From positions 563,585-627,584 of the forward strand of contig RHPI01002503.1 in the NCBI GenBank assembly GCA_009103225.1: a DNA stretch of 64,000 nt, given 5' to 3'. Positions within the stretch are counted from its first letter, which is position 1. Every line of letters starts with the position of its first letter. The stretch is from Chlorokybus atmophyticus. Taxonomy: Eukaryota > Plantae > Mesostigma and Chlorokybus algae. The translations under genes were made by a program, and so were the position numbers. Below are positions 1 to 24,349 of this stretch, piece after piece. Under the pieces are notes generated by a model. The model ran no database searches and was not told where the DNA came from. It saw only the letters and a list, made by a program, of their open reading frames with translations.

Positions 1-420
1 CCCCCCCCCGCACGTGAGCGAAAGCTTTTCATTTCTTAACAAGAGGTGGTATCATTGCTTGCACATGAGGAGGTTGCAGCCATTCGCAATCTTTCTGGTT
101 AATAAGCAGGGTTGCAGTCAGGAAGTAGACCTGACAGCTACACAGTGGTGGTAGTTTGCCAGAGTACCTTGATCAGAAGGAACACCTCTCAAGTCATCAT
201 CAATGACGCTTTGTGGTATCAATGATAGGAAGGTGTGGAGTGTTATTACGTTGGGGTTAATATTGACAGCAGGTGTACATGCTGTACACTGAACAACGCA
301 ATCAAGCCATAGTCCTTCACGATCCCTGTGGACTTTTGTTCTGTGCATACACTCTGTGAGACGCGTAGTATACTGGTTGTACGCCATCCACTCATGCACA
401 GCAGCTGTCTGTATTTGTAG

Positions 421-1915
421 GAGCTGCGGGACCTTGGAGTTAAGACGATCTGGGGTGAGCCCAGCGACGTTGGTGCAGCAGTTGGTTCTTCCAAGTTCCA
501 TGTTGTTGTTGACAACAACGGCAAAGATATGGAAGTTGTTGGGTAAGCTCTTGATTCAAGAACAGTGCATTCTCCTGCCAGCACGCATGACATCAGCAGC
601 AAGCCACTTTGCGTCCCTTACGTGAGGAGCTTGAGTGAGCCCCTTTAAGGCCAAGTTGTGCATGCAACGTTGATGCTGCACACTTGCGAGTCCAACTTCA
701 CCCTTGTGCATCAAGTCGTTGCATGTCCTTGCTGTTCGCTTATGCGCTGTGCAATGTTACAGACCTGTGGCGGCTTGGGCAAAGGGAGCTAAAGTCGAGC
801 AGTTTTTGTTTGTCAGCAGCGCAGGCATCTATGTTTCGTCAGACCAGCAGCCTCATGTAGAAGGGGTGGGTACCCAGTCTACTGTTTGCAATGTCCAGTA
901 ATAGCACAGGGCTGCCTGTAAGTTGCTGAAGCTGTGGATGCCACAGGACAAAGTGAAGGAGGATTCCGGGCATGCACAGGTTGAGCGCCACCTGAAGGGA
1001 CTTGGACTTCCACACGGTTTTGCTGCATTCCGCCCGCAGTACATCACGGGTGACGGCAACAACAAGGACTGTGAAGAGTGGTTCTTTGACCGTAAGTGGT
1101 CACATGCGCCAGCCGCCAGCTGCCCTGTTCATTGCGATCTGCCACAGCTCTCCAAAAAACTCTTGTCCTGCAGGCATTGTGCGAGACCGTCCCGTGCCGA
1201 TCCCCGGATCTGGGATGCAGATGACTGTCATCGCGCATGCTGCGGACTTGGCGTCTATGATTGCAGCTGCGGTGGCATCTCCAGAAAAGGCTAAGGACCA
1301 GATCTTCAACTGTGTCAGTGATCGTGCCGTCACATTCGACGGTCTTGTACGCCTCTGCGGAGCCGCTGCCGGCAAGACTCCCAAGATTATTCATTATGAT
1401 CCCAAGGCTGCTGGTGTTGACGCCAAGAAGGCATTCCCGTTCCGGAATCAGGTCTGAAACCGCAATGTGTAATCCACGTGCTTTGTCTGCCACCAGCGGA
1501 TGTGTTGCATGTCAACGCAACACATGTTACCAGTGCATTGAGCAACAAGCATTTTTTACATATTCAGTAAAAATCATATTATTGGTTGTGTAGGTTGCAT
1601 GCTTCCACAATTAGGGCGCAGGCACTGAGGGCTCACTCGTGCGGGTTGTCATTCATGTGAACACAGCGTGCAATGCACTGCATTCTGTGGCTGCTTGTCA
1701 CGCCCAGTAGGCGCGATGTGCGCGCTAACCATCCATCCTTTTGGCAGCACTTTTACTCAGAACCCAGGGCGGCAAAAGAAAGTCTTGGCTGGACAGCAAA
1801 GCGCCGGCTTGGAGAGGAGCTCAAGGAGCGCTTTGCTGCGTATACAGCATCCGGGCGTGACAAGAAGGCTATCGAATTTCCGCTGGACGATCAGATTCTC
1901 AAGGCAGCCAAGTGA
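421..1915 (+). CDS. CSP41a: Chloroplast stem-loop binding protein of 41 kDa, a-type (NAD-dependent epimerase/dehydratase fold); 5' exons not located, probably outside the window
   Basis: Exons 421-541, 763-865, 947-1091, 1174-1451 and 1748-1915 join through GT-AG introns. They give [91 protein letters not shown] and [16 protein letters not shown], which match plant CSP41a motifs as I recall them. Confidence 0.93.
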
Positions 1916-2559
1916 GTCACCTTCGACGGCACAGAGCGCGCACGGACGTGTGTGCTGATCAGTTTTGAAGGCCATTGGCCAAATCACTGGAGACACGAGT
2001 AGAGGTATTGAAAATGTTGATCGGTAGGTGTGATGATGCTGCTATGTTACTCGCTGGCCTGCCTTGCTCACCATACGCGCTTTGAAAGCGCCGCTTTCCA
2101 TGCATTGTCACGCGTTTTACATGTGCTACACGGATGATGTGTAGGGTACGGTAAGTACAGGGGAGATAGATGCATGCATATGCGCAAGTTAGTTGACAGC
2201 TGCGCCCATGCTATTTGCTACATGATCGGATAGAATTGTAGTTGTGGTTGTTGTTTGAGGTTTTCTGAAAATTTTGTTGTAACAGTTTATGGGGTCCCTC
2301 GCTTGTTGAGTCCATCCAATGTCGTTGCTTGATAATGTGCGCTCCTGGACCGAAGGCGAAACACAGACTGCTGTTGTTCCTCAAGAATGGCGCCATGCCA
2401 TCATGCATAGCCGCATGATGCATGACCGAACAATGCGGAATACAATTGCGTACACAGATTGAAGGTGCTATTGCACCGATGCAGTTTGCCATGAGCAGTT
2501 ATTCACGCATGCTACCGCATATACTCGTACACAGCAATCCGTGTAGTCTATTTGTTATA

Positions 2560-2808
2560 CCCCCCTTCCCCTTTATTCAAGGAAGCATTATTGCCGATTT
2601 CAACCATTCGTGTGCACGAAGCACCCGACTTACAAAACGCCTTTTCCCCGCCTGTCACATCGCGACAGGCGACGAAAAGACCGATTTTGTGCAAATTGCG
2701 CGGTGCACACGAAAGCTTTCCCCTACGAAAGGTTCGTAGGGGAAAGCTTTCGTAGGTCGAAATTGGCAATAAGTTACTTACGATGCACTCCTTGAAATAG
2801 AGAGGGAG
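2560..2808. mobile_element. Foldback / Stowaway-like MITE with nested inverted repeats
   Basis: Begins TA|CCCCCCTTCC and ends GAGAGGGAG. Inverted pairs: 2588-2605 with 2755-2772 (16/18), 2607-2617 with 2703-2713 (11/11), 2649-2656 with 2664-2671 (8/8), and a perfect 20-bp hairpin 2710-2729 with 2733-2752. Confidence 0.6.
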
Positions 2809-2824
2809 TGTCTTTAGGAAGGGG

Positions 2825-3039
2825 NNNNNNNNNNNNNNNNNNNNNNNNNNNNNNNNNNNNNNNNNNNNNNNNNNNNNNNNNNNNNNNNNNNNNNNNNNNN
2901 NNNNNNNNNNNNNNNNNNNNNNNNNNNNNNNNNNNNNNNNNNNNNNNNNNNNNNNNNNNNNNNNNNNNNNNNNNNNNNNNNNNNNNNNNNNNNNNNNNNN
3001 NNNNNNNNNNNNNNNNNNNNNNNNNNNNNNNNNNNNNNN
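2825..3039. other. Assembly gap (N run)
   Basis: N run bordered by G bases. Other gaps are at 18321-18494 and 56626-56676, with single Ns at 28893 and 33025. Confidence 1.
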
Positions 3040-3835
3040 GGTCCCTAGGACAGGGGGTCCAAGTAAGTACGGCAGTCACGCTCATGCAGCCCACAGCAAC
3101 CATGCTCGCACACGCACCTTGGTTTTATATATACCAAACGACGGGTCAACCTATAGCGCATATTTCATCACTATCAAAACTATCATCACTACTCCCACCA
3201 GTAATGCATGCACGCATGCATTCACAGTCGGTCATCTGCATTATGAATTCGCGTGCGCTCATGAAATATTATTATTGTATTTACAAGTGTGATTCTGAAA
3301 TGTCATTAATAGTATGTTGCATGCAACGGTACAAGTATAATAGCCCACATTGATAGGATATATGCATTATGCTGTTATTGAGCGATAGATGACGTCATTG
3401 TGTACATGTTAATGATAATCTCATATACCATAACTGTTGTTACAGAGGTTTTATTAGACATCAAATTGGAGACAGAGACATTAACATAGACATTAAAATC
3501 GCTAACTAGCGGTGCGGCTGATTGGGCGGGATTGGGCCGGCCGGCCGGCCGGGGAGGACGGCATTAGGGCACAAAGACACATCACGCGCACTAAGGGCCA
3601 TCACACACAGCACCCGAAACTACATGCCTGCCGCGCGCATACCGAGCAGCCCGCCTGCCTCTCATTGGCTATGCGACGTGTATCAGCTATCGGCCATTCG
3701 ATTTGTGTTAAACAACTTTCAACCTTCCAAAGCCCATATCGTGCAATTGCACAAAGTACATGCGAATGAATAAAAGAATCCATTCATTTTGAGCACGACA
3801 TGCACGGTGCACATATGCGTTATGTGTGCGTTGTA

Positions 3836-4301
3836 CAGTCCACCCCCGCTAAAAGACTTTGCTCAAGAGAATAACCCCGCTTGTAGCATACGTTCTGAGA
3901 TCACCAACGATGCTACAGGCAAATGTTAGTTCTTAAGAGAATATGACTAACTGCGAAGAGCATATTATTTTTCATGACATTTTTGCAAATGTCAGTGTGC
4001 GTAATCTTAACATTGAGGGAGTAGCGCGTGACGGGTGTGTCATCAGGCGTAATGAGTGCGATAGACAAGGCGTGATGGGTACAGTGTCACGCGTAATTAG
4101 CGTAATGAGCGTGATGGCATGATACGTGACGTAATGCGCGTGATGTAATGGGCGTGATGGGCGTATTGAACAGCATTGTAGCATACAAATGCTCTTAATG
4201 TTTAAGAGCATATTATGCTCTTTTTAACGCCAAGAGCATAACCCCGCCAGGAGCAAACTATCTTTAAAAGCAAACAGCATGCTCTTAAAAGGGGTAGACT
4301 G
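3836..4301. mobile_element. Tc1/mariner-pogo-type MITE (466 bp) with TA target-site duplication
   Basis: TA|CAGTCCACCCCC ... GGGGTAGACTG|TA (TA at 3834-3835 and 4302-4303). Subterminal AAGAG(A/C)ATAACCCCG and AAGAGCAT/ATGCTCTT motifs recur. Confidence 0.75.
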
Positions 4302-4355
4302 TACAATAAATGTTTCGATGTAACTAGGTACGTACCACTATGTACCTTAACTGTA

Positions 4356-4808
4356 CAGTATACCTCCACTATATTCATCACGTGTATCTTTCATTCCATC
4401 AACGGGGTTATTCTCTTGGCGTTTACAATAATATATACTACTTTTTACATAATATATATTCTACTAACAGAGGTATTGCAAAATAACCGTAAGCCACGTG
4501 ATTATGTTGTAACGTGGCATACATTGAATTGATAATAGTCAACAATATACCAATTATGTACGTAACTATATATGAGTTCTGTAATATGTTGATGTTTATA
4601 ATATTTAAAATAAACATGCCATTAACAAGGTATTCCCCCGTAACAAGACTGCCCACACAAAATTTGAACCCTTTGTTGTAGTCTTATAGCGTACAAAACT
4701 ATTCCATTAACCGATGATATTAGTCTGTAAAACCATTGAATTTTTGCAAATTCACGATCTCAACGGGGTTATTTTCATAAACCGAAGTCTTGTAACGCGG
4801 GTAGACTA
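4356..4808. mobile_element. Second, more degenerate copy of the same MITE family
   Basis: TA|CAGTATACCTCC ... GCGGGTAGACTA|TA. Contains CAACGGGGTTATT at ~4400 and ~4761, the reverse complement of the family subterminal motif. AT-rich interior. Confidence 0.55.
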
Positions 4809-4810
4809 TA

Positions 4811-5160
4811 TAGTTTACCCATTTGTAAGAGCATACTGGTATCCTCAAAAATTGTATGCTCTTGGCGACTAAGAGCATAATATGCTCTTGAACGTTAAGA
4901 GCATATATATGCTATAAGCGCAGATTCATTTCGCCCATCACGCCTATTGGTTGGGCCGGCCTGTCGGCATTCAACCTACATCACACATCCCGCGCTAGGG
5001 CCATCACACGGCACCCGCGACTGCCGGGCTGCGCGGCAGTATGTGCGGCCCGCCTGCTTCTCATTGGCTAGGCGGCGAGAACAAGCGTTACACCGTTAGA
5101 TCTGCCTAAGCACGATATTGGCCGTCCAAAGCACATCCAATTGTTTAAGCGCATGCCAAT
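4811..5160. mobile_element. Third MITE-family copy, inverted, abutting copy 2 at a shared TA; right end not found
   Basis: 4811-4950 is a diverged reverse complement of 4146-4301. 4945-5075 is a diverged direct repeat of 3520-3680. Confidence 0.55.
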
Positions 5161-6170
5161 AACTGTTAAAATAAGCACAGTTCTGCAGCGTGACCGCTTA
5201 TGGCTGCATGTTGATAAGTATGCTGCAATATGGTGCAATATGGTGCGATATGATTAGCAAATGCTGTTAAGTGTTTCAAAACTTAGTATTCAACGTAACG
5301 TTCACGCCACGGTACGTGCTGCGGTACTTAGTATATAATGCCGAGGTTACGACCATCAAAATAATGCTAACCTGAATTACCTTAACGTTAAGATTCAACT
5401 AAACGAAAAATCGCATCGTTAGGCCACCATTTGGTCACGCATGAGATTGATCAAATGGGATCGCTACGGTGACAACAGCCAGTTGCTCAAAAAGGCAGCG
5501 AAATGGCCAATCATTGCAAAGATACGTAAAAGATGCTGAAAAATATCTCAGCGGCAACCGCTTACCAACGGCGACCCAATATTGCTAGGATTTGGTGCAA
5601 TTGCGGCATAGTTAGTGGTTAAAATGGCCGCGTTTTTGGCGGTACGAGGTCGGGGCAGGCCTCATACCCCAAAGACATGCCGCCACTACTCACCCTCGTT
5701 CTAACTAATCCACTCTACCCTTTAACGCTAATTGATTACACGCTATAGTTACTGCGTCATCAAACATGGTCAACAGCCGAACAATCGGTTTCACCTATGT
5801 ATGCTTATGCATTATACAGGCCGGAAGCCCGATGGGAAGTCGCACGCAATGTTTAGGTGACAACGGAGCGCCGTCGATATGACATCTGTCCCCGTGGCGC
5901 TCTGTGTGACGATAGATGAACGAGGACTGTGGCGTGACAGCATGCTGACACTTAGATGGTTAGACATTGTGCACCGCATATCGGGGTTGTCATGTAGTGC
6001 GAGAGGCTGTGCTCATTTCGCGTGTCAGGACCTCGTCATTGCGGTGCTACAATGCTGATCATGCTGACGTCAAGGTGACCGCAAGGCGAATTGCACCTTG
6101 TCGTGATGCATGTTAAAGGGTTTGGTGGTGAGGGTTGCGTGGTGCGGCGGCGGCGGCGGCGGCATCTGTG

Positions 6171-6578
6171 ATGGCTGACTTTAGGCAGGACGTAGTTGGG
6201 GGTGCGGCCCACGATGGTGATGCAGAGGGGGGCGAGGAGTTTGTGGCCGGGCTCGCGCACAGCATGCGGGGCGAGGTGGCTGAAGGCCTTTTTGCTGCAC
6301 GTAGCAGGCATCGTGGCCATTGGCGAGGTGTGATACCGCTCGGTGACGACCGTGACGAGCAACAAATGGTTGAGGATTGGGAGTTCTACACTGGTGGCTC
6401 GCAACCTAACATGATAAACGCCCTCGCTATGTGCCTCTCCTGTGGCATGGAGGTCACAGCCAGTGTGCATGTTGCTATGGTTTGTGCATGCTTCCAATTG
6501 CTGTGGTTTGTGCTTGCTGTGCGTGACAATTGTCGTGATCGCCGAACGATTGCTGCCAAACTGCATTGTGCCTTGTAA
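6171..6578 (+). CDS. Hypothetical intronless ORF (135 aa) convergent with the Academ-like gene; possible passenger gene
   Basis: ATG at 6171 within the listed 6135-6578 ORF. Acidic N-terminal half, hydrophobic Cys-rich C-terminal half. No recognisable family. Confidence 0.25.
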   Translation: MADFRQDVVGGAAHDGDAEGGEEFVAGLAHSMRGEVAEGLFAARSRHRGHWRGVIPLGDDRDEQQMVEDWEFYTGGSQPNMINALAMCLSCGMEVTASVHVAMVCACFQLLWFVLAVRDNCRDRRTIAAKLHCAL

Positions 6579-6638
6579 TGTCCAACCATGCGTTGCATGT
6601 GCCTCATTATTGCATGTGACTGCATTGTCTTGTCATTG

Positions 6639-9600
6639 TCATGCAGTGCATGCTGACTGCGTGCTGTTAAGACTGCTGAAGCTGCTGTCGCTATCGCTGC
6701 TTGCATATGAGTCGCAATCTTGTACAGCCTCTGCTTGTGTGGTTTGCTGTGGCGTGAGCATCTCGTCGATGCCATCGTCGTCCTCACTTGAAGTGTCAGT
6801 GCTAAAGCCTTGGGTGCTGGTGTCGCTGGCGTCTGGGTGCACCTGCATTGGAGTACCTGCGCAACTCTAAAGGTTAGCGTTGGTATGCGGTATGCTTATG
6901 ACATGCTTGAGGTGTGTCCCTATAAGGTCTGACCAGCTGGTGTGGACTGAGTGCCTGCTTGTGTCGGGTCTGTACCGCTGTTGTCGTTGTTGCTGCAATT
7001 CAAGCATCTACACGCTCTGGAGCATTGCGTGCCGGTGCGTTTGCATCGGCATTGTTTGCTTTTGCATCCCGTCTTACAGCCGCACCCTCGCAGGAGCAGA
7101 CTGCGCCTTTGCCGAGCTGCTGCCATATTGTCCTGAGTGTCCATCTCCGCGGTGTACACCCCCTCTTGGAGGATGTAACCGTACTCCTCCAAGTTGGCCA
7201 TATGCAGTGTGGTTTTGCATGCCTGCATCCACATGGTGTGCACCCAGACGCTGCGCAGACAATGCAGCCTGAGTGCTTCAACAGTTGGCATTCGATCTGT
7301 TTCCTTCCAGATCGTGTGCCAACTGCCGTTGTGTATTGCCATGAGCCATTCGCTGATGGCAGAGTGGGAGTGCTTATCGCTGCCTAGTCCGTTAACCTCC
7401 ACAAACAATGTCTCTGGGCTGGTTGCCTGAAAACAGCCACGGTGCTTCGTGAAGTATGCACAGCCGAACATGCGCATGAACATGCCTATGTCTCCACTGC
7501 AGTCAAGCTCTGACATGGCCTGTGGTGGGTTTGCCGTGATAAACTCAGTGTTCTGCATCAGGACGACCTCCCAGAAGAAGACCTTACTGAGCCCAGCCAG
7601 AAAGGAAGTGTAGTCACTGCCAGTGCACGCGAACCATTTCAGCAAGTATTGTGCTCTCTCCTGCACAGGTATGAACCGTAGTTGTGGCGTGCGTTGTGTG
7701 GCAGCCAGCAGCATGTTCAAGTTCACAAAGGGTGGCCTGCTGGCTGCTGCGGTCGAAGAGGCAAGCTGAATGTGCACTGTCTTCGTCTCTGCAGGTGTGC
7801 CACGCCAGGTCTCCAGCATGGATAAACCAATCATGGAGGTGTCCGTGTCAGGGCTGTATATCAAAATATGAGACTGGGGTGCGCGGTGGGCGTGCACCCA
7901 AACTCTGCTGTCCGCCTCCGCGTGGTTGCATGCAAATGCATCCGTCACCGTGAACACGGGTCCTGATGTTGTCATGGACAACACCCTCGCCATGTCTTTG
8001 TATTCAGGCAAGTCGCTCCCCCCTGCAAGCACCAAGGACTGTCCGTCACGGAGGTAAGGCGTCGCTAGTTCTGGCAGGTGTTGTGTGATCAAGCAGCAAA
8101 GCTGCCTCTTGTGACTTCTGTCGCCGAGCAGAGTTCTCCAATTGCGTGGCAATGGCGTGTGCAAGTGTAGCGGCGCTGTTTGTGTGCCTGCACTGCCTGC
8201 ATGCTGGTCACGCCGACTTTGGAGTGATGTCTTGACGCCTGTGGCCAAGCTGGGTTCGTCAAAGATGATGTGCATTGCTTGCAGGCAGGGGCTAAAAAGT
8301 CTGGGCATAACAGCGGCGCGGAAGAGGTGGGTGATGTAATCTCCAATGCTGATGCATTGGGGTCCCGGTAGCATGTTGATCATAAACATGCCTTCACTAA
8401 TGACGCATTCAATGCGCGCAGGGAAAGAGCGCGACTGGCACTCTGGTGTGGAGTCCGTAAGCTTGTTGAGGAATGTGGCCTTGTTACCTTTGCGCATGAG
8501 GCCATCCATCTCAAATAAGGCCTGTGGAACCTCCAAGTAGCGGGCATGCACGGCATCTGTTGGGGCATCCTTCATGGCTAAGTGTTTCAGCACGAGAGTC
8601 TGCGAGACAATGCTGGTTTGAGTATGTTCGTGCTGGCAGTTGCATGCTTCACTCACCGTTTCTCTAACCACTTTGCTGAGAGCCTTAGCTGTGCGGTTGA
8701 CTGGCTTTGGTTTTGCCATAGTCTTCAGGTTGAAACGCCTTGTGACCCTGGCGGCAGGTACACCTTGCCCATAGCGCTGGTTGCAGTAGATGTTCATTGC
8801 GTCTTGTCCGATCACATAGTGTTTCAATAGGTCTGCTGCCACACTATCTGACGCAACTTCCCCTGTCACTAAGTGCTTCAGAACGCCTGCAGTGTCCACC
8901 TGCAGAGCACTTGATTGACGCAGCACACACAACATAGCTCTCAACGTGGTCTGCGTTTTATTAGGGTCGCTCCGAGCAGCCTGCGGGTCTTTACGCTTCC
9001 TGCGGAAGGTAGCAGGGCGCAGCTCCTCTCGCAAGCGCTTCAGGCCTTCAGCCCTGTAAGTGCAATATACGGTCTTGGCTCTCATACTGTCTGCTGTTGG
9101 CCTGGCCAGCGTCAGCTTCAAGTCCCGATTAATCAATGTCTCATGCGCCTCATCAATGGCAACGTTGCTGCCTGCATTGCCCTTGATGGACAGGGTGAAT
9201 GCCCCACTCTGCATTGCCGCCATCACATGGTGTGGCCATGATAGAGTATCCGCAATATGGCCCACCACCAACCTTTGGTAGTGTGGCCTGTCCCATGCGA
9301 AATACAGAGGCGCTAGTGCCTTGTACGCTGCAATGCGCAGCTCCCAGTCGCCAGTGCGTATGGCGATGAAAAGAGCTATGTATGCAGCACAGTCCCTCTG
9401 TGTGAAGTTCCACAAGAAGGCCCAGGTAAAATCCGCGGCTGCACGCTCATTACCGTATTGCTGGAAGCCATCAAAGTGATGTAATGCCAGCAACTTATCA
9501 ATCTTGCCTTCTTCGCCAGGCCACTCAAGAGGCAATTCCAGTGCCCCGTATAAAGGACTGGATGCGAAGCAGTCAAATTGCACACGCAGCACACACTCGT

Positions 9601-12600
9601 AGGTTTGCAGCAAGAGAGTGTTGGATCTCTTCCAATGGTGACCGTCCACCAGCTGGTTACGCGCTGATCCTGCAGCAAACCCAGCGGCTATGGCTAAGGG
9701 GTCAACACCGGCGTCTAAATATATTTTCCATAACACTGGTGTCGTGTTGTACAAGGCATGCCAGTCCCCAACAAAAGGCAGCAGCCACTCCCAGAACACA
9801 GGGTCTTGGGACTTTAGCATTTGCATGAGAGCCCATGTCTTCTGATCCCCCCCCACCACCAAGTATGTCCCGCGGTGTTCAATTTGCAGCTGACTTGCTA
9901 GCTCCAACAATGCCAGCCTCAGATTGTCCGGGCGGTCTGGATTGTAAGGCAATAGGGGAAGGTAGACAACATGGCTGGTTGGTGGTGCATCTGCCAAATC
10001 TGCCATCAGTGTCGTTTTCAATTTGCAGTTGTGCTCCTCAGTGAATTGCTGCCTGCACAACGTCGAGTAGTGCGCACTGGCCTTGAAGTTGGCCATTGCA
10101 GCTTGCTCGCTAACCGTGGGTGTGATGACAGCTTCGGGAGATGGACGGTGCCTGGTAATGTGACCCGGCAATGGAGCAGTGACTGGCGGTACACTGGGTG
10201 CTCTTAGACCGGCCTCTGTAAGAGTCCTCCACCGCACAGGCTGCAGATCACCAGATTAAGGTTAGCGTTCGCACTTGAGTTCCATTGCACCAATGCCAGG
10301 TCTCAGAGAGCATACATGCACTTGTCGTGGATAGGCAGGCAGTTGCATGCTGCTGATTGGCCTGGGCACCGACACTTGTGTTGTTGTGCAATGCAAGTCA
10401 GCTTCGCCGCGCTCATGGTAGCGCAGCGCATGGGCAGCCTTGCAGTCCCAGTTGTCGATGGAGGATAGTACAAAGTCCCCACTGTGCATGTCAACAGGGG
10501 CTGGATTTTGTAGTACAATACAGGCTCTAGCCTGTATGTGTCTGGCAACATATGGTAATTCAGCATCTGGACACATGCAATGCACTCAGCACTTGTGCGA
10601 CGCTCACCGGTTGAGTGTGGGTTTACTGACGCAGATACAAAGTTGATTCAGCAGCGTCATCAGCAGCGTAGACTTGCTGAGTGCGTCGCATGCGTCAGCA
10701 AGAGACAAGTGGAGGATGAAGTAAGCCTTGGGGTTGCGGCTGTACACACAAGTAGCAAATAGGTAGGCAGACTGCACTTGCAACTCACGAGCACGCCGCT
10801 TGGCCGCATCACTCTCAGCTACGCCTTGCTGTTGCGTTCTACGCTGCATGCTCCTAAGGCCAGTTAGGGCCGCAAACAGCTTGGCCAACAGTGGATTGGT
10901 CGGCTGCAAATCCTTTATCATGTTCATTGTGCGCAGGTCAGGTACTCCAGTCGCATTGAGTTTTGCCCGCTGACGCGCCTCTTCGGTCATCAGTTTACTG
11001 ATGTTGTCCAGCACCCCATCCGTGAGGAACTGGTCCACGGAAGTGGGTGGTGTAACGCCCACACCACTGCTTGCGCGTGCATGACCCTCCGGTGCTGAAT
11101 GTGTCCTAACCCTTTTCAACAGGCAGTTGATGGGATCGGACCATGCTGCCAGCAACAGGGAACCCAGCCTTGGCGCTGCAGTATGGATACGCAGCAAGTC
11201 CCCAAAGGCTCTTTTGCAACAGTCCATCAACTGCCGATTGGTGACCTCAAATTGCTCAGCAACCTCTCCTAGCAACACACATGCGTCCACCTCCGCTACC
11301 TCCCGCGCCACATGCCGCGCTGCCATCACCAAAGGCGAGTCCCCTTCCAGCCCAGCTGCGCGCTCTTTCAATAGCTCTTGCTGCTCCTCAGTGCATTGAC
11401 TTGGGCCATGATTGCCTCGCTGTGCGCTGGCATCTGTCGCGCTACCTTGTTGTTGTGAGCCGTGGCTGCCTTGCCCAGCATCCCAACCTGCACCCGATGT
11501 TGGCTCACCGGGCTGTCTGCCTTGCTGCGCAGCTTCGTTCGTACGTGTTGCGGGCTCTGCCCTAACAGGGCTGTTTGGCGTAGCCCTCAAGTCTTCTATC
11601 ACCTGCGCATACTCTTGACAGCGTGCTGTCTCCGCAGCAAGACTTGCCTCTGCCACGTGTAGACAGTGTGTAGACTCTTCTAGTTGTGCTTCCAGACCGC
11701 GGTAATTGTCGCCCATGGCCTATATACATACGTTAGAATACGTGGCATCGTCATCGTCACATGCACAGTGCATGCTCAGACAGTGCCTGTCAATTGCATA
11801 CACACACCTGCTGGTCATCCTCAAAGTGACCCCTCAGCGTCGCCCACTCTTGCCGCTGCACATCATGCTCCCACTTCTCTGCAGTAAACTCACGCCTCAG
11901 TGCATCTGCCTGGTCACGCAGCTGCACCTCTGCCGTAACCCTCTCGTGCAATCGTTGGTGCAAGTCTTCAACCTTGTCTTCCAACTCCTGACCACGGCAC
12001 ATGCTTGAGTGTTACGCCATTATTATACTATCGCAAGTCAACACCTATTCATTCAACAACATACCGAGCATACTGTGGTTAAAGAATGATTCTCTGTGCG
12101 CAGCATATGGGCTTCATCTCGCCAGCGCTGCACAGTGTCATCCTCATCAGCAGCTTCCTCAAATTGGCTCATCACATGACTGTGAGGCATCCATTCGGGA
12201 GATTGCTGCTCTTCCGTGTGCACTGTGAACACATTCGAATCCGCGCTAGGAGGGGTCCTATTGTGCAAAGACCACACACCACGGCTATCACGGCAGTTCA
12301 TATTCTGCTCGGGCCGCACATCAGCATGCTCATACTGCTCCAACAATGTACTCAGCTCCTCCAGCCTGTCCAGCATTTCAATGTTGCTGGCTTGACAACG
12401 CGAGAGTTGCTGTTGATTGCGCATACAAGATCTGCACGTGCGCACACGCTTGCCAACTCGCACAGCAATGCCTGCACGCACATCCATATCACACTCAGAC
12501 CGTGCTCGTAGTGTGTAGAAGGACGCAAATACTGACTTATAATGCCCTATTTGAATTGGTGGGGAACCTTCTAACAAAATGTGGCACACCTGGGGTGCCA

Positions 12601-13591
12601 GCTGAACTCAATGGAGGCGTAAATTGAGAGTACACACTGCTACCACCTTGGGAGCCTGCCCTACCACCACCACCAGTTACACCTACAGCTCTTGATATGG
12701 ACTGCCTCGCTGGTGTGCCGCTCGTGTGTCGGCCGATTTGTGGCCTCCCCACAGGTTGAACAGCCACATACTCCCCCTGCGAGTGCACGTTATTAAGGGA
12801 TTGCGGTGCACATGCTGCACAACCTTGCATCTCAATACTTACATCTGGTGTTTGGATGTACATTGTGTGTGTGGCCTGGACTGCTTCTCTGTGTATGGGT
12901 GCACCAGCCGGCACTAACTCAGGTTCTACACAGTGCTCATGGTTCTGCGAGTCCAAACCAGGTGCCTCCTCATGCAGCTGGTTCAGGTCGCCTGCTGGTG
13001 GGCTTGCATCTGAGGCAGGCTGCTCGGATTCAGGGGCACTGGACTGGTCGGGCGTCGCAAGTGTTGAAGCTACCGACACTGGCGGCGCAGAGTTAGCCTT
13101 TTCAACAAACTCACCCTGCGTAAGACATCATTCAACGCAATGCATGACACACCCAACAGCACAGAGCGTCGCGTCCACCACCCACTCACCTCAACTTTGG
13201 TGAGGCTATCGTTTTCAGGGTCCAGACGCCACATGCACCCGTGCGTTAATGCGTACAGCTGCACCGTGTACAATGACTGCAAGCTGCTCAACTTGCAATC
13301 CCTACGCACAGTTCCCCACATAGCATCTTGACGCTGGCGACAACGGGTCACCGAATCCTTCTGTGCTGTAGCGTGTGCTTTGCGCTTGGCCACATCGTTT
13401 ACCAACGTTTTAGTAGCACTGGCATGAGCTTTGCGCTTCTCCTTCTGCTTCTTACGCGGCCCCTCCTTCGACACCTGCTCCAGCTCGTCACTAGCAGGTA
13501 TGGACTGGGGCTGCACCTGACTGAGCGGCCCATCAGTGGCTGCCCCAGCCTCCACACATTCGTCGGCGCCGGCAGCCACGGCGTCGCCCAT
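6639..13591 (-). CDS. AcademX-type transposase / XPG-like nuclease / Cys-rich finger protein (~2,122 aa, 8 exons)
   Basis: Phase-consistent GT-AG exons 13591-13190, 13115-12590, 12531-12074, 11987-11808, 11719-10608, 10541-10376, 10240-6934 and 6856-6639 total 6,369 nt. Transposase-like motifs: LLNQLCICVSKPTLNR, SIDNWD, VGGDQKT, FVGDWH, AIDEAHETLINRDLK. XPG-like motifs: ISEGMFM, HIIFDE, CNHAEADSRVWVHA, IYSPDTD, TGSDYTSFLAGLSK. C-terminal GCGCKTGCKSKQCRCKRTGTQCSRACRCLNC. Confidence 0.8.
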
Positions 13592-16431
13592 CCCGCCGCC
13601 CACCACGCCGACCACTACGCACCACACTGACGCCAAGTCTCACAATTCGTGATCTATCTTTCAACTGATCAGCAGGGTGAGGCGGCTACGCAGGCTGACA
13701 TTCGGCAATGCGCGGAAAACGCGCCCACGCGTTCGCAACACAAGAGTGCGGCTAGTCACTTGCATATCACTCCCATGTCACAAAGGACGGTCACTGCGAG
13801 CACAGATCGAGGCCACTCGATGCCCACCATATCGGACGGACGCCCCTAAAGCTCGAGCCGGCTGCATACTGGGCCTTCGGACTGTATAACCAGCAACTCT
13901 TGGCATGCTCCGTACCCGCGATGCGCATCATTGCTCCAAATACCTCACTGACCTGCGCACACCTGCGTTCTGCTGCCACAGTCTGTCACGGAGCGCGTCA
14001 GGGCTGTCACGCAGCAGATACGGATTTAACCGCCCAAAAAGGCTCAACCGTACTCAATGCGGAGGTCCCCAGCCTACAGCCGCTGGAACGCATCATGGCG
14101 GCACGGATGCACTGCACAGCGTCCAACTTCAACTACTAACGGCATGCCTGTCCTATAGCAAAAAGGTACCGCTGCAAACAAGTTATATACGCCCAGGGTC
14201 GGATGCAGTCGGTCAACAACCGCGATTCGCAATGGCCTACAGTGGCCCTTCCCGTATAACAGACCGGAAGCCACTGGCAGACTTAAAGCACTTGTTGTTG
14301 AGGAGTCCAACTTGGGACTGCCGTTTGTTCAGTACGCTGTCAGTGACTGTAACAGTAGCACATTCCCAGAACATGCGTCGCCGCCGGGCAACAAAGACCC
14401 TACACCACCTCGGAGCCATCATCTGTGGAATGGACAGGCAGGTGTTTGGGTGCTGTGGATGCGGCGGAGTACAAACCAATATAACAGCAGCGCAATGCAC
14501 ATGAAGGCGGGCCATGTGGCTTGTCTGGGAGAGAGAGGGAGGGAAGTGGAGGGAGGGAAAGGTCTAGCGTATCGGCATTGGCTGGTTGGCTAGAGGCAAT
14601 ACACTGATGGTTCGTGTAAGACAGTACCGGATTGGGCACTGTGTTCGTGTGTATTGGAGCATGCCTGGTGGCCACCAATCTTTGCTGTTCAGCCATGCCT
14701 TGGTGCAGTGTTGAGCAACAACAACTGTGCTGCTAGGCTTGCCAGAACGGGCAAGGCTTGAAGTGTGCAACACAGCTGGAAGCTTGTAAAAAGTACTGGT
14801 CTAAAGTACTAGTGTCAACGCGATGAGACTCGGACAGCAGTCTCAGACTGTCTCCCGTTTTGCTTCTCATGTTTTGTACTGGCAAGCAGTTCGGAGCGTC
14901 CTTTGGACACCCTGACTGAGCCCGGTCCAGGGCGCGCACAAGGAGCTGACTGAAGGATGCCTCCCTCCAGTGAATCCGGTAGCAGAGATGACGCCTCACA
15001 GGTGGGTGAGAGGGTGAAGCTGTGTGTGATGTGACGACAGCTCCGGGTATGCGTTTTAAAGTCTATGTCAGAATGCTGTTGTTAGCGTAGACTGAAAGAA
15101 TGTGAATCTGGGTGATTGCGGCTTGAAGTCCTGTCAGTTTGTTGTTTCAACTGTGACAGAAGCAGCCTACAAGCGATTTTGGTTGTGAGCCGTTGCACAG
15201 TACACTGACTAGAATGAGTTCTGTGTCCCGGCAGAGTGCAGTGTTGTGTTGCTACAGTTGTAGCTTGCGCACAGGTTGAGACTTGGTGTGACACTCGGCA
15301 CGGGGCCGTCCCTAGACACGAGCTTTCATCACGGAAGCTCGGCGCTAAGCTTAAAACCTCAAACATACAGTCGTTTTAGCGCTTAGCAGCACTTTGTATG
15401 AAACCGTGCATCTCAGCCAGTCACCCACTGACTGACTGAAATGCACTCCTCCACAATAGAGGTCTGCAGCTCGTCAAGCGCACAGCTGGTAGTCGTATAC
15501 TATTCTAGTGTACAATGTAGCAGCGGACTTGTGCACATGCGTTGCGCCAATTGTGCCAAGGAGGCATGCAATTGCGTAGTCAACGTGCGTGCCAGCATGT
15601 GCATGCTTCTCGAAGTGATAGCATACTGTGCTTCGTAGGCGCACTCCCACGTCCACACCAGCTGTTGGGTAGCGTACGTGCATCGGATAAGCGTTGGCCT
15701 GTTGCTTCAAGACAGCCGGCTTTATGCCGGCTCCTCAGGAAGCACTAGCAAGTGTGCAGCTCAGCCCAGGCTGGTCACTGTGCTTGTTGCCTACCTCGGC
15801 TCGTTGATTCAAACGCTAGCACAAACTAAGCTTTTGCACAGGATCATGCGGCCAAAAAGTGTGCTAGTCAGTGGTAACTTGTATGCTGCAGACGCGGTCC
15901 TGGCACACACACGTAATTTGCGCATGAGGACATTGGCGATCGTTTCAGTACGCACAGACCATGTGTATCTATGTGCACATCTGGTGTGCGCGTACTACAA
16001 ATATCACCTATTGTAAGGCCCACTACCGACACTGTACGACCAATCGTTTGTTAGACTGAGCTTGACCTGTGGGAACGCTGCCCCACTGGCCTTTTCCTCA
16101 CTTTGCAACATCACCCACCACAACACATATGCGCTTCGCATTTACTGTACAGTGTCATCAGCATGTGTTGCACAACCCTGCGATACCCATGAACAGCTGT
16201 AAGTAACTAGTACTACTGTTTCGAGCAGTGCGATAGAGGGCATACGCAAACAAGCAGGAATACAAAATCTGCAGCTACCGTAGCGGCAGATATTGAGTGC
16301 CGTATGTTGTGACAGTGATTATGTGAATACGTGCGCCTTAGATATGCATGAAAATTGGATGACTGCGAGGTATGCAGACATGTTATGACTGCAACAACAT
16401 GACTCACTGGTTGCATTGTCTCTGTCTGCAG

Positions 16432-19400
16432 GCATCTGGGCTCTCCCATGATCAAGGTGATCAAGCCACCGTGAAGGACCTACTGAAGAAGGACTCCAGC
16501 ATACAGGATGCAGTGTTTGGCGTGTTGTACACGCTGTCAAAAGAGAAGTACGCCCAGTCGAGGAAGTTCGCCATCGCGGCAATCATCCTCGACTTTGTTC
16601 AGATGGTGGTGTTCATGATTGGCGCGCCCTTCCCATGGCACTTCAACACCGACAATGTCTTATTCAAAGTCGTGAACTACATCCAGCTGAACAATCCCCT
16701 CGTTGCCCTCGGGTACTGTCTCCTTTGCTTTGTTCCTTAGCAAGAAGCAGCGACCTGCACTGCATATTTGTCTGCATGTCTATATCTACGGTGTCATCTT
16801 GTATGTCACATTTGCAGACAAGTACAGACAATGTGCTGACAAGTACATGTGTGCACGTGCGCATCTGAGCGCTTGTGCGGTTTGCCTGCTGGGTGGGGTT
16901 TAGTTGTTGAGGGAGCGGCAACTTGTGATGCTCACAGTCTGCTGCTTGTTGTGCAGGTACCCATACTTCTTGGTTGTATTTCTTCTGTTGTCCTTGATGT
17001 TGGTAGCGAGTGCGGCAATGTGTGTGTTCGTGGCGCACAACTTCAAGACGGGGCACTTTCCTTTTGTATGGCCGATCAAGGTGCTGCGATTCTTCATCAG
17101 CATCTTCTTCAGCGTGTTCTACATATCCTCGCTCAACACCTTCATGGTGGCCTTCGATGCCAAGATCAAAAACCTGCCGCTCGGGCAGCTACCTTACCTA
17201 GAAGCCTTCCCCACCAAACACATCTTTGACACAGGCAACCTCATGCTGTCGGGCTTCGGCATCCTCATGTGTGTTGTCTTCTTCGTCATTGCGCTGCTGC
17301 TGGAGCTGGCCAACTCCGAGCAAGACCCATTGACAAACAACCTCCTCGGAACGCCTGACTCAAAAGAGGGCACCATCCTGTTCCTGCTCAAGACGCTGAT
17401 GACAATCGTGGCCACACTGGTGTCGGACCCCGAGTACATGAAGATCCAGGCATTGGTGCTGTGCCTAGCTTCCTGGTTGATACAGTACAGGCAGCTGCGC
17501 TGGGTGCCCTGCTACTCTCCTTTCATCAACCGGCTGCGCTCCGCCCTCTTCTCCTCCCTTGCGATGCAGGCCGGCGTGCTCATCCTGCTCGTGTTCTTCC
17601 CGTCCGCCTCCACCGAGCTCACCATCGTTATGGCCGTCCTCTCGATGCTGGCGGTGCCTGCTGGCTGGTACGCCGCCAATGCACGGTTGAAGAGGTCTAT
17701 CAGTGTTGCCAGCAAGTTCCTGAACAAGCCCGTCAAGGCCCCTGAAGACGACGAGGAGGAGTATATCCATGAGTTCAGGGACCCTCAGGAGGTGGAAATC
17801 TGCTCGCGATGCCTGCAGGTAAGAGGACCCAACAGTCACCGCACTGGAGAGAGCCGCCGTTGAACTTTGTTTTGTTATTTAAACTGCATACCCATCTGTC
17901 CGGTTCGTTGCTGCCTTACAGGAGGATCAGCGTAAGCGCAAGCGGGTGATGATTCCCAATGAGGCCCAGCTCAATGCCGCCGAATTGATCCTCCTCACAG
18001 GACTGACGCAGTTCCCCGACTCCGCGCTCCTCCACATAATCTATGCTTCTTTCTTGATAAGCCTTCGCCACAACAACTCCCAGGCTCAGTTCCACATGGA
18101 GCGGGCCCGAAGCCTCAACCCCGGTGCCAGAGAGCGGTTCATGATATTTGTAAGGGACAGGGAGCGAAAGCACTCTGCGCAGAGCGAGAGCACGGGGGAA
18201 GCGAGCATGGACCTGGTCTCGTACGTTGAATTTCAAAACAATTATAACCTCAGCCTCGCGTCTCACAGGTAATATAGCATCAGCCCTCCCCCCTTCCCCC
18301 CCCACCCCCCACCCCCACACNNNNNNNNNNNNNNNNNNNNNNNNNNNNNNNNNNNNNNNNNNNNNNNNNNNNNNNNNNNNNNNNNNNNNNNNNNNNNNNN
18401 NNNNNNNNNNNNNNNNNNNNNNNNNNNNNNNNNNNNNNNNNNNNNNNNNNNNNNNNNNNNNNNNNNNNNNNNNNNNNNNNNNNNNNNNNNNNNNCCACAC
18501 CCCCGCCCACACACGCACGCACACGCACACACCAGAGAGAGATGCTTGCGCATGTGTACGTGTGTGTCTGAGAAAGACCACCTGTATGGTCTCTCGCTCA
18601 ACTACGCACACACGCACGTCAGCTTGATGGCATGATAACGGTCTGGTGCATGTAGGCTGGCGCTGAAGGCGACACGGCGTTTCTGGCGGGTTGTCATCGG
18701 CCATGACGTGACATTCAGAGCGCTGTCGTCGGCGTTCAACAACATAGACTCTGCGGAGAGCAAGGCCAACAAGGCGTACCGCGCGGTGCTGGAGCGGTAC
18801 CCGCGAAGCGTGAAGCTGCTGCGGTCGTATGCATGTTTCCTGGAGGAGGTGCGCAACGACCCGTGGGGCGCGCGCAAGTACTACAATGAGGCGGACAGGC
18901 AGGAGGAGGCGCTGGCGCAGGCCAACCAGGAGGCGGGGCAGGGCGGCGAGGGCCGCATTGATGACAGCAAGGACGGCATTGTGGTCATCAACAAGGTCGG
19001 CATCATCCAGTTTACCAACAAGGTCACGCTGAAACTGTTCGGGTACAAGAAGGACGAGCTCTGGGGGAAGAACGTGCGAATCCTCATGCCTCAGGTAAGT
19101 GTTGACTCAATTGTGACTGACCTTCAGTTGACATAATGCCCGTGCCTTACGTCGGCTTCCTCCTCTCATGTCTCAGCCATACTCCGGACAGCACGACAGC
19201 TACATCACCGCCTACAACACCACGGGCAAGGCTAAAATTATCGGCACCACGCGCGCACTGGAAGCAAAGCACAAGGAGGGCCACACGTTCCCGGTCGCCC
19301 TATCGGTCACCAAGGTGGAAACCAACGGTGATACTTCCTTCACGGGCGTGTTGCGTCCTGTCGAGGACGGCGACACGGCTACTGTCACGCTGTCATTACC

Positions 19401-22400
19401 TAACTGCACGGTCCAAGCCGTCAACAAGGTCTTCTCCAACATGTTTGGGTACAAGGTTGGCGACATTGTCGGGAAGAACATCCGCAAACTCATCGCGCAG
19501 CGCCACCTTCCGGCGTTGGCAAATGTTAGAGAATATCTGGCACAGTTTGAAATACCAACTGATGAGAACGGTGAAGTTGCTGCTGCGAAAAAGTCCAAAC
19601 TGGACGCCGTGCACAAGTCAGGTGATGAGTTTCCGATATCAATGGAAGTAGTGGCCAGACAGGGAGAGGCAGCAGACTCGGGCCTGTTGGAATTGCGGAT
19701 TCAATCGCTGAATGATCAATTGGGCATCCTGACAATTGACGTGCGGGGCCAGATTGTGTCCGCCAACAAGCAAGTGTGCGCGATGTTTGGCCACAGCGAA
19801 GAGGGTCTCCTGGCCATGAACGTGTCGCAAGTTATGCCGCTGCCTTACTCGAGATTTCACTCGATGTACTTGAGAAGGTTTGCTGCGACCGGGAAGGGCA
19901 GCAGCCGTGTGATAGGTACTGTAGGCCGCACTGTCATGGGCCTCCATCGCGACGGCAGCACCTTTGCGATGGCTCTGGAGGTGAGAGAGATTAGGGACGA
20001 AATCACCAATGCGCGCTTGTTCTCCGGACGCATCACCTTGGCCGACCCTCGCCGCCGCGATGTCAACCGCGTGGATTCGATAACCACATTTGACGGTGAC
20101 ATCAAGAGTGCCTCCGAGTCATCGATAGATATGCTGGGCAGCGCTTCCACAGAGCTTGAAGGGATGTACGCTGTGGACATTCTGGACTTCCCTGATGGCG
20201 AGAGGGTCCCCTTGAATGAGCGCTTGGCCAAGCGCATGCAAGAATTGCGGGGGGTTGCATGCTGGACAGCGCAAGCAAAGCAAGCAAACGGCAGCTCTGT
20301 ACCTGTCTCAGTTGTCATAGAAGAGGCCGAGTACGATGCTGAGCCTGTTGTCTCAGCCCAGTTGTGGGCTTTGTCTTTGCTGGAGGGCGTGATCGGCATC
20401 AATGACCTCGGAGTGATCACGCAAGCAAACAGAGGCGTAGAGCTTATGTGCGGTTATAGCAATCGTGAGCTCGTCGGCAGCAATGTCACCAAGCTCATGC
20501 CGCCTGAAGTGGCTGCCGAGCACGGGAACTACCTGGCGGCATATAAGGCGACAGGCAAGAAGAAGGTTATCAACATGCGGCGTCCCGTCATGGCCGTCCA
20601 CAAAGACGGTTCCTCCATCTGCATTGACTTGGAGGTGGCTGAAGTCGGCCGCGCAACCGCCGGCCTCGCAGATGGCACCGTGTATATTGCACGCCTAGTG
20701 GTGGGCCAGCCAGGGGAAGAGGCTCTTGCAGCTGCCAACAGCAGCAGCAAACCTGGCGGCCTCGCTCGCGGTGTTAATGACCGTCTTATGCGGGCTTCAG
20801 AGTCCGAGGATGCGGTGCGCAAACGTCCAGCACTCGCCAATCTACCCAGCCCCAACGCCGAGCGAGCGCAAGTAACGCACAAGCAGCAGCTGATGCCAGC
20901 ACCGAGATTGCCGGGAAGGAGCTCTCCTTCATTGAACGGGCTTCCATTGATATCGGATGGAGGCGTTGCGCGCATGGGTGCGCACCTGCCCTACGCTTTG
21001 GAGGCGTTTATAAAGGACCGTATGGACGACATACCGGACGCTCTGCCGGATAAACATTCTCCACCTGCAGGCGACGCAGTTGAAGGTCCACTATCACCTG
21101 GAAGGTCATTGCAATCTTGCGCAACAGGCAATTTAGCTCGCATACCTACTGCTACTTTGCAAACTCACGCGCCCGCTGTCTTGCAGAAAGGCTGTACGTT
21201 TCTCGTTGACCGACGATGATGCTGACGATGGTCCAACAACCAAAGCATGTACGTCGGTGTCAATGTAACCTCCAGTGCTCACGGTCTGTGGCAGTGAATT
21301 GCTGATCGGCTCCATGCAACAGCTCCAAGAGATGACAAGGAAAGAGAGCTGCGGCTGGATGCGCTATGCGAGGAACCAAACCCAGCAAGTCCCACTGTTG
21401 ACGAGAGCGAGCGTATGTCTGCTGTTGACCCCTCTGAGGTGAGCACTGCACAGAGACGCGTATGAGATCAAACAGAGCAACCGCTCAGCAAGGGCACTCC
21501 CAATGAGGACTATGTTTTCGTTTTTCAATCCCAGGTGACGGACTCCGAGTACGACAGCAAGGATGGAGGGGGAGCCAACTTCCAGAGGGCTAAGCGATAT
21601 CGCTCCATTCTCAAGCTAGTCAGCAACAGCAAGATGAGAGGCGCGATCGCCGCTCTGGTTTTTCACACCCGCATCATCGCAATTATCCTGGTGCTATCGC
21701 ATGTCGTCTGCTTCGCTGTCATGCGCACAGAGACGCAGAGTCAGATGAATCTTGAAAGCCAGATCAAGGTTGTGGGCGACGCCACAGTCTACACGCAGCG
21801 CGTGGCCATATATTAACGCACAATTGAACACTATGCAAACGACTTGCTGCAGAGTAATGCGACTGTAGCCGTTGTTGGCGACAACGAACAGAAGATGACG
21901 AAAGCTCTTGATGCACTTGAAGTAGTCCTAAACGGGATGTACCTGGGGTTTAAGAAATTGAAAGAGCCTGACAGCCAGCCGTTGAGAAGGCTATTCGATG
22001 ACCCCATTCTCAACATCACCGAGCTCGCCGACACAACTCCCCCGCGTTACAAACACATGTTGTACGGGCTCTGGGATGCGGCCAAGTTCTACTTGCAAGC
22101 AGGGAGACAGGTGGCCACCCCACACAACCATACGCATGACGAGGACACGGCTGCATGGCAGTATGTAATGACGAACGTACCTGTGATCTGCCCGGCCTTT
22201 GTAGATGCGCAGTACGACGTAGCCGATCGTACCACGCAGCACGTTGTGCGAGTGCAGCACATCCAGACTGTTGTCTACGTTTTAGAGGGAGGCTTTGTCT
22301 GCGTGCTGACGGTGGTGTACCTTTGGACTCTCCTTCGGCGCGTGGCGGAGGAGCGGATTGCCCTCTTCACAGTCTTCCTCTTTGTTCCTCGCCCCATCGT

Positions 22401-23988: not shown

Positions 23989-24349
23989 CTTTCTGTTTGT
24001 TAGTCTGACCCTCACCATTTGCTAAACGTGCTGCGTACCTGTAGTGTAGGTGATAGCAAGAATATGCAGCAACCGAGAAAAACATTGAGCCGCGCAGCAG
24101 CTCAAGCTATAGGGTTAGACGAATGTGATGCACAGTTGTGTAATAAGAGCAACGCACAGTTGCTTAACAAGTGTAGATTTTGTAGACTACGTATAATCTG
24201 AACTAGAGTGGATGTAACACGGCCACCAGCCATGCATGCAACGTCATTGTACTATGCACATCATACCAGCGCAATGACAATCTGAACTTCTCAATCAGTT
24301 GGACTGCTCGGAGGTTACTGTTTGTTATTGTGCTGTATGACCATGTGAC

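Follow-up and report, generated by a model that had tools for sequence, protein, structure and literature searches.

Academ elements are among the least studied superfamilies of DDE (Asp-Asp-Glu) transposons, and the AcademX lineage of this superfamily is reportedly known from work by Kapitonov and Jurka in 2010 and by Kojima in 2020. AcademX elements generate target-site duplications (TSDs) of 3-4 bp, whereas AcademH elements generate TSDs of 9-10 bp and encode a helicase (PMC10045372). In the literature examined, the described Academ hosts are animals, fungi, and a red alga. As the Academ reference we used the curated bivalve transposable-element library in supplement 12 of PMC10294476. It contains the consensus Academ_A.kagoshimensis_2, which is classified as DNA/Academ-1 (PMC10294476) and is bounded by perfect terminal inverted repeats (TIRs) of 15 nt. 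This consensus encodes one protein in which a DDE transposase is followed by a PIN/XPG-type nuclease and a Cys finger, with no helicase.

Here we describe a gene with the same module order on the minus strand of a nuclear genome contig of the alga Chlorokybus atmophyticus. It occupies positions 6639-13591 of the window, which is the whole 64,000-nt stretch analysed (GenBank assembly GCA_009103225.1, contig RHPI01002503.1, positions 563,585-627,584). With a probability of roughly 0.8, we regard it as a structurally intact copy of a single long AcademX-type cut-and-paste transposon gene, carried in the nuclear DNA of a green-lineage alga. A preliminary description of the locus, made from the letters alone, had listed a series of motifs and assigned them to the DDE transposase, XPG/FEN1-like nuclease, and Cys finger of AcademX. 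All of these motifs are present in the order given there, and the assignment is borne out by profile searches, predicted fold, the curated Academ-1 consensus, and TIR-bounded relatives. What is new here is the host lineage, whereas the element itself is of a known kind. By occurring intact in a streptophyte that diverged early, the gene stretches the Academ host range into the green lineage. In addition, it offers a full-length protein, catalytically complete by sequence, with which the role of the fused FEN/XPG nuclease in transposition can be probed.

Transposase, nuclease, and finger modules

The 3.3-kb main exon (6920-10240; all coordinates of the gene refer to the minus strand) encodes most of the transposase, the entire nuclease, and the Cys finger, and closes with a TAG stop at 6920-6922. 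Its open reading frame (ORF; 6920-10237) of 1,105 residues is present as listed. The transposase part of this exon (8558-10237) contains the second catalytic Asp in GGDQKT (GDQKT, 9836-9850), the GDWH motif (9758-9769), an all-alpha insertion, and the catalytic Glu in the block IDEAHE..NRDLK (9116-9154), within which DEAHE is located at 9140-9154 and NRDLK at 9116-9130. The first catalytic Asp is encoded by the preceding exon (10322-10541), which carries SSIDNWD (SIDNWD, 10445-10462) together with an LHCTTTQ strand and aligns to the family pattern S-x-DN-x-D ... HGT..Q.

The window protein matches Pfam DUF6589 (PF20231) above threshold, with 44.5 bits against a gathering cutoff of 27 (E 1.1e-11), and its relatives score 48-55 bits to the same profile. 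An exhaustive HMMER search recovered 2,563 representative relatives at E<=1e-3 and 138 at E<=1e-30. Many of these are full-length proteins of 1,250-2,250 residues that span exon residues 78-1095 and possess long, variable N-termini. In the alignment of the N-terminal half, the near-invariant columns are the D of S.DN.D, the D of GD.KT, the H of GDWH, and D-E-x-H-E followed by N and K, and every one of them is retained in the window protein.

For the animal relative P0005 (residues 1-720), an AlphaFold model with a predicted local distance difference test (pLDDT) score of 80.5 places the catalytic residues on strand 1, just past strand 4, and, after a helical insertion of 220 residues, on the next helix. 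The segment corresponding to exon 10322-10541 forms strand β1 of the RNase H fold in this model. Its best structural matches (VIA Z) are the P element (11.2, over 340 residues), Hermes (7.7), RAG1 (6.8), and Tn5 (6.4). As modelled, the module is a DDE transposase with an RNase H fold and a large helical insertion. The P element, hAT (Hermes), and RAG1/Transib transposases resemble it in the RNase H-fold DDE core and in the large helical insertion before the catalytic Glu. However, the likeness is one of fold, with no sequence-level similarity; these transposases carry no fused nuclease, and neither THAP nor BED was detected in the window protein.

Downstream of the transposase, the region 7238-8485 encodes a putative 5' nuclease of the FEN1/EXO1/XPG fold. 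Its acidic residues are the E in EGMF, the D in IIFDEP, the E and D in EADSR (7904-7918), both D in SPDTD (7841-7855), and the D in TGSDY (7610-7624), the last of which is followed by GLSK (7583-7594). In the alignment of the region 7238-8560, D101, E215, D217, D238, D240, and D316 are invariant in the window protein and 29 relatives. The nuclease profile finds human EXO1 as its top match in the PDB (E 0.0036), through the motifs vFD..sPK..rR and SGCDY.S..G.G, while Pfam XPG_N and XPG_I gave no match at E<=1 in the window protein. The AlphaFold2 model of the window's own nuclease has a pLDDT of 89.4 and structurally matches EXO1 (VIA Z 14.7), FEN1 (13.5), Xrn1 (13.0), and XPG/Rad2 (12.1), as well as GEN1. 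The fold matches span 250 residues at Z 12-15 and are accompanied by the six invariant acidic columns and the E in EGMF. The predicted fold and active site place the module, at the superfamily level only, among the Rad2/XPG-FEN1 structure-specific 5' nucleases, which are characterised by a PIN-like fold with a helical arch/H3TH and by seven acidic metal ligands. EXO1, FEN1, and XPG (Rad2) and the XRN nucleases share with it the fold, the arrangement of acidic residues in the active site, and the SGCDY..G.G helix-hairpin motif. In the window protein, by contrast, the nuclease lies inside a larger transposase fusion, and it shows ~11% identity to solved structures. The profile check proposed in the preliminary description is answered by the DUF6589 match above its cutoff and by the best nuclease match to EXO1. 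Likewise, the acidic motifs that it took to be intact are confirmed, in that the alignments keep all catalytic residues.

The C-terminal finger (6995-7087) is of the CXC-type, Cys-rich 'Cys8' kind. The Pfam TCR/CXC match is sub-threshold, with Tesmin/TSO1 CXC (PF03638) reaching 15.6 bits, below the gathering cutoff of 23.5, and UniProt names relatives 'Tesmin/TSO1-like CXC domain-containing'. The finger also matches that of the curated Academ-1 consensus Academ_A.kagoshimensis_2, with 46% identity in a pairwise comparison (E 2e-10).

The motifs of Academ_A.kagoshimensis_2 are, in order, VADNVDH..FHG, FDQPLY, GGFH, IIEQ, and VFDGY, followed by ADAD, GEDTD, TGCDTTS..GIGKK, and CGCKTSC...C.C......C...C..C. 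The window protein corresponds to it at DN.D...HG, G.(W/F)H, E...N.D.K, FD, E.D / D.D, TG(C/S)D..S...G..K, and CGCKT.C...C.C. The two differ in that the window gene belongs to a 'DEAHE' subgroup, has a streptophyte host, contains introns, and shows no detectable TIR or TSD. The codon strings of DEAHE and GDWH do not occur in the bivalve library by text search, and its Academ-1 consensus is of the 'IEQ / G.FH' subgroup. The relative P0111 links the two sides. It shares 53% identity with the consensus peptide of Academ_A.kagoshimensis_1 and is collinear with the window protein over 769 residues (E 3e-38), with a separate match at the finger. The AcademH elements encode a transposase of the homologous superfamily (PMC10045372), but they differ in their helicase and their longer TSDs, and neither the window gene nor its flanking ORFs match a helicase family by profile search. 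The gene combines a homologous DDE transposase, a C-terminal XPG/FEN-type nuclease, and a Cys finger, with no helicase, as AcademX elements do. The assignment of the predicted protein as an AcademX-type fusion of DDE transposase, XPG/FEN-like nuclease, and Cys finger is supported.

Mobile relatives and host lineage

A metagenome scan for relatives yielded 70 loci, many of which form multi-copy families within one assembly, at 97-99.9% identity. The copies of these families end in TIRs starting with CAGTC and are flanked by 4-bp duplications, for example CTTA at the locus L014 and TAAA at L022. L014 is a 6.2-kb element with 19-nt TIRs, the TSD CTTA, and a single ORF of 1,703 residues with DUF6589. 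Compared with the whole 1,105-residue window exon, this ORF shows 29% identity (E 2e-116), and the DDE motifs, nuclease, and finger are collinear. L014 and L022 belong to the metagenome-labelled assembly WLWD01 and have the identical domain order to the window gene, providing a 6.2-kb complete element of its subgroup with TIRs and a 4-bp TSD. They differ from the window copy, which contains introns and has no TIRs detected, in their uninterrupted single ORF, clear TIRs and TSD, and multiple copies. WLWD01 (loci L013-L075) contains at least four multi-copy AcademX families of 97-99.9% identity with CAGTC...GACTG termini and 4-bp TSDs, which appear recently active. In addition, L001 spans 5.9 kb between 28-nt TIRs, with no TSD seen.

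A relative from the algal clade, L005 (Logan contig of SRR23617307, 952-12566), is contained in an 11.6-kb element with 22-nt TIRs that are 95% complementary. Upstream of its gene are several ORFs without a known domain. If its termini are TCC.../...CTA, a possible flank duplication of 7-8 bp (GGAAATTA / GGAATTA) is present, which would not fit the AcademX rule because AcademX TSDs are 3-4 bp.

On the basis of the modelled DDE and two-metal 5' nuclease folds and their residues, together with the TIRs and 4-bp TSDs shown by the relatives, a mechanism can be proposed. The DDE domain, with a catalytic triad formed by the D in SIDNWD, the D in GDQKT, and the E in DEAHE, would cleave the transferred strands and join them to target DNA opened with a stagger of 4 nt. 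The nuclease fused to it would cut or trim the non-transferred strand or the 5' flaps at the excised ends, while the finger would bind DNA. The window copy could provide the protein in trans, if other copies have the same ends.

Among named proteins, the relative of highest identity is a Chlorokybus atmophyticus protein from EukProt (43%), and the named full-length relatives come from amphioxus, crinoid, brittle star, annelid, and mussel; the animal relatives fit the described host range. The host was first thought to be a chlorophyte, which probably does not hold. Chlorokybus is a streptophyte, and a maximum-likelihood tree built from the insertion-domain region pairs the window protein with the Chlorokybus protein at 99/94 support. 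Most likely, then, the host is Chlorokybus, which branches early among the relatives of land plants. This pair and three metagenomic sequences form a clade apart from the animal groups, which suggests, as far as the tree reaches, that the algal lineage is old and was not recently acquired from animals. The window protein and its relatives from amphioxus, echinoderms, annelid, and mussel constitute the 'DEAHE / GDWH' group. The 'IEQ / G.FH' group (P0111, P0115, and the curated bivalve Academ-1 consensus) stands outside it as a sister group on a very long branch, and the split between the two may correspond to named Academ subgroups. The phylogeny called for in the preliminary description yields an algal clade apart from animals and a long-branch 'IEQ' group, in a tree limited to the insertion domain of the window protein and its relatives.

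When 1,007 genomes of the green lineage were surveyed in 2025 with an Academ profile included, recently active elements were reported for seven superfamilies, and Academ was not among them. We found no report of Academ in green algae in the literature searched. The view that a green-lineage Academ had not been described agrees with that literature, whose scope did not extend to Repbase and Kojima 2020.

Gene model and alternative explanations

Between 11719 and 6920, the same frame is open in the three segments 11719-10607, 10585-10265, and 10255-6923. Apart from the terminal TAG at 6922, these ~1,600 codons contain no more than four in-frame stops (10606, 10588, 10264, and 10258), all of which fall within two GT..AG segments of 66 and 81 nt. 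The 66-nt segment (10542-10607, GTGAGC...CCAG) contains the stops at 10606 and 10588. It ranks top of 18 phase-consistent choices by the family hidden Markov model (HMM; 84.3 bits vs 73.2 for the runner-up), and excising it retains the conserved VSKPTLNR motif and the family spacing to S.DN.D. The 81-nt segment (10241-10321, GTGCAT...CTGCAG; alternatively 75 nt with the donor at 10315) contains the stops at 10264 and 10258 and is located in a variable linker, where homology does not discriminate between the donors. Phase-consistent GT-AG joins arise commonly by chance, with 18 alternatives at 10608/10541 and 19 at the following junction, so that the existence of such a join is weak evidence alone. 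The two predicted introns are supported by more than this, 10542-10607 by homology and both by the clustering of stops.

The 3' half of the exon 10608-11719 (from ~11170) shows homology to the part of the family sequence that precedes the DDE core, while the 5' half is of coiled-coil, low-complexity character. The tblastn alignments of relatives extend upstream to 11173 and 11011, and family homology ends at ~11170. The preliminary description had joined eight GT-AG exons into ~2,122 residues. We rebuilt this model from the ATG at 13591 to 6639 (exons 13591-13190, 13115-12590, 12471-12074, 11987-11808, 11719-10608, 10541-10322, 10240-6934, and 6856-6639), with consistent phases, no internal stops, and a product of 2,120 residues; its introns are 66-118 nt long and have a GC content of 0.43-0.55, below that of the exons. 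This much of the claim stands. However, the upstream and last exons have no homology, and an equally legal model of 1,549 residues runs from the ATG at 11714-11716 (GCCATGG context) to the TAG at 6920.

The four candidate upstream exons are long open frames with GT-AG borders, separated by introns of 74, 118, 86, and 88 nt, and the exon 12590-13115 has an optional in-frame intron of 66 nt at 12777-12842. The candidate exons in 11808-13591 show no homology in relatives, no Pfam match, and low Atlas recognition. At the C-terminus, family homology stops at 6989 and the unspliced frame stops at 6920. An optional last intron (6857-6933, 77 nt, GTCAGA...GCGCAG) would lead in phase to an acidic, Ser-rich last exon (6639-6856), for which again no relatives, no Pfam match, and low Atlas recognition were found. 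We predict that two or more short spliceosomal introns interrupt the gene, which may also have a long N-terminal extension confined to its lineage.

A search for sequencing runs covering the locus retrieved four runs, all with short, DNA-like contigs, and no RNA run. Two of these independent runs, belonging to two studies, contain contigs identical to the window at the locus, and one DNA-like contig (10230-10402) continues unspliced across the 81-nt intron. Two further contigs match at 85-95% only, near 7275 and 7941, and may be paralogous copies or low-coverage assembly noise; they and the 43%-identical Chlorokybus protein hint at further copies in the genome.

Several points weigh against an intact transposon gene at this locus. 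Around the window copy, no TIRs were detected above the shuffle null, the comparison of 1-6900 with 13400-24000 giving a best score of 14.5 against null values up to 15.5. The search combined repeat finding, blastn-short, an exhaustive ungapped diagonal scan with the shuffle null, and a terminus-plus-TSD scan. It covered flanks of 6.9 and 10.6 kb, and short TIRs would escape it. TSD-flanked terminus candidates also occur at chance frequency. The flank comparison suggested in the preliminary description thus yielded no TIRs at the window copy, and a 3-4 bp TSD could be read only from defined termini. The designation of the locus there as a DNA transposon applies to the family, whose relatives have TIRs and 4-bp TSDs, rather than to the locus itself. 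Moreover, all splice junctions and the expression of the gene are predictions from the DNA alone, and the link to Academ is made through the bivalve consensus, not through the Repbase Academ proteins themselves. The locus occupies a 15.3-kb piece (3040-18320) between two assembly gaps (2825-3039 and 18321-18494), and its linkage to host genes therefore crosses gaps.

Membership of the gene in the family is well supported, while the TIR search does not identify the locus as a complete element. Without TIRs, the window copy could not move itself. It may be immobilised yet coding, and possibly trans-acting, or it may be an element with very short ends.

Four other explanations were weighed against a single intact AcademX-type gene. 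The locus might comprise two adjacent genes, a coiled-coil gene (13591 to ~11790) and then a transposase gene of 1,549 residues from the ATG at 11716, a division that we consider possible, although the odds are against it. The start context and a product length typical of the relatives agree with such a division, as do the missing homology and low Atlas recognition of the upstream exons and the stop at 11790 in the unspliced frame of exon 11808-11987. However, only ~74 nt would separate this stop from the ATG, all segments lie on the same strand with phase-consistent GT-AG joins, and the relatives too have long, variable N-termini. It is unlikely, in our view, that the copy is a domesticated host gene that has lost its TIRs, gained introns and a coiled-coil N-terminal extension, and been selected for DNA cutting or repair. 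An intact frame of ~1,550-2,120 codons with all catalytic residues speaks for such a gene, the absence of detected TIRs and TSD fits it, and the lineage-specific N-terminal region is contiguous with the transposase exon. Against this, introns are common in algal transposable-element genes, the algal-clade relative L005 is located inside its TIR-bounded element, the two diverged contig matches hint at paralogous copies, and the search would miss short TIRs. The more particular proposal of a domesticated AcademX transposase-nuclease with a new coiled-coil N-terminus, serving as a Chlorokybus host gene and possibly the sole intact member among dead copies, strikes us as improbable. If true, programmed DNA cutting, or the mobilising or silencing of other copies, would be possible.

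There is very little to be said for a dead copy, in which the four in-frame stops would be genuine mutations and the 'introns' would be an artefact of the GT-AG search. Chance pairs of consistent phase are indeed many, and the junctions are predicted only. Yet the stops are limited to the 66- and 81-nt segments in ~1,600 otherwise open codons, removal of the 66 nt restores the spacing from VSK.TLNR to S.DN.D with the top HMM score, and the introns have lower GC than the exons. A contaminant or assembly chimera from an animal or another eukaryote is hardly credible. The named full-length relatives are animal proteins and the locus is flanked by N gaps on both sides, but its closest relative is the Chlorokybus protein in a well-supported clade apart from animals, identical contigs were found in runs of two studies, and the GC content of the locus is like that of the rest of the window. 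In addition, the same scaffold carries a UGP3-like gene and other green-lineage genes.

Surroundings of the gene

The ORFs within ~5 kb of the gene contain no methyltransferase or other Pfam domain that would indicate cargo. An inverted pair with 12/14 matches and a 4-bp TSD (6676/14846) was rejected as a candidate for termini; it overlaps a CTG-rich coding repeat, and chance alone would produce ~1.3 pairs of this quality. One 200-nt contig agrees exactly with the window over 10230-10402, beyond which it runs on for 27 nt that do not resemble the window.

The window contains runs of N at 2825-3039, 18321-18494, and 56626-56676, and single N positions at 28893 and 33025. The ORFs listed across gaps (2808-3353 on the plus strand and 17916-18704 on the minus strand) are artefacts. 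Right after the second gap, a gene on the plus strand (18708-21219) encodes TPR repeats of the TmcB type and, after them, several PAS domains (Pfam E 1e-20 and 4e-26). On the minus strand, 38466-39761 contains exons of the UGP3-like gene (plastid UDP-glucose pyrophosphorylase), with C-terminal hexapeptide repeats (E 8e-38). The presence of this gene in the window supports a green-lineage host.

An AT-rich stretch at 3597-5104 (39-43% GC) is bounded by direct repeats of ~80-100 nt (3597-3705 and 5000-5104) that are ~75% alike. Many nested inverted repeats lie within it, such as the 47-nt pair 4176-4222 and 4871-4917 with 89% identity. In appearance this stretch is a small repeat of the non-autonomous or foldback type, with no relation to the Academ gene.

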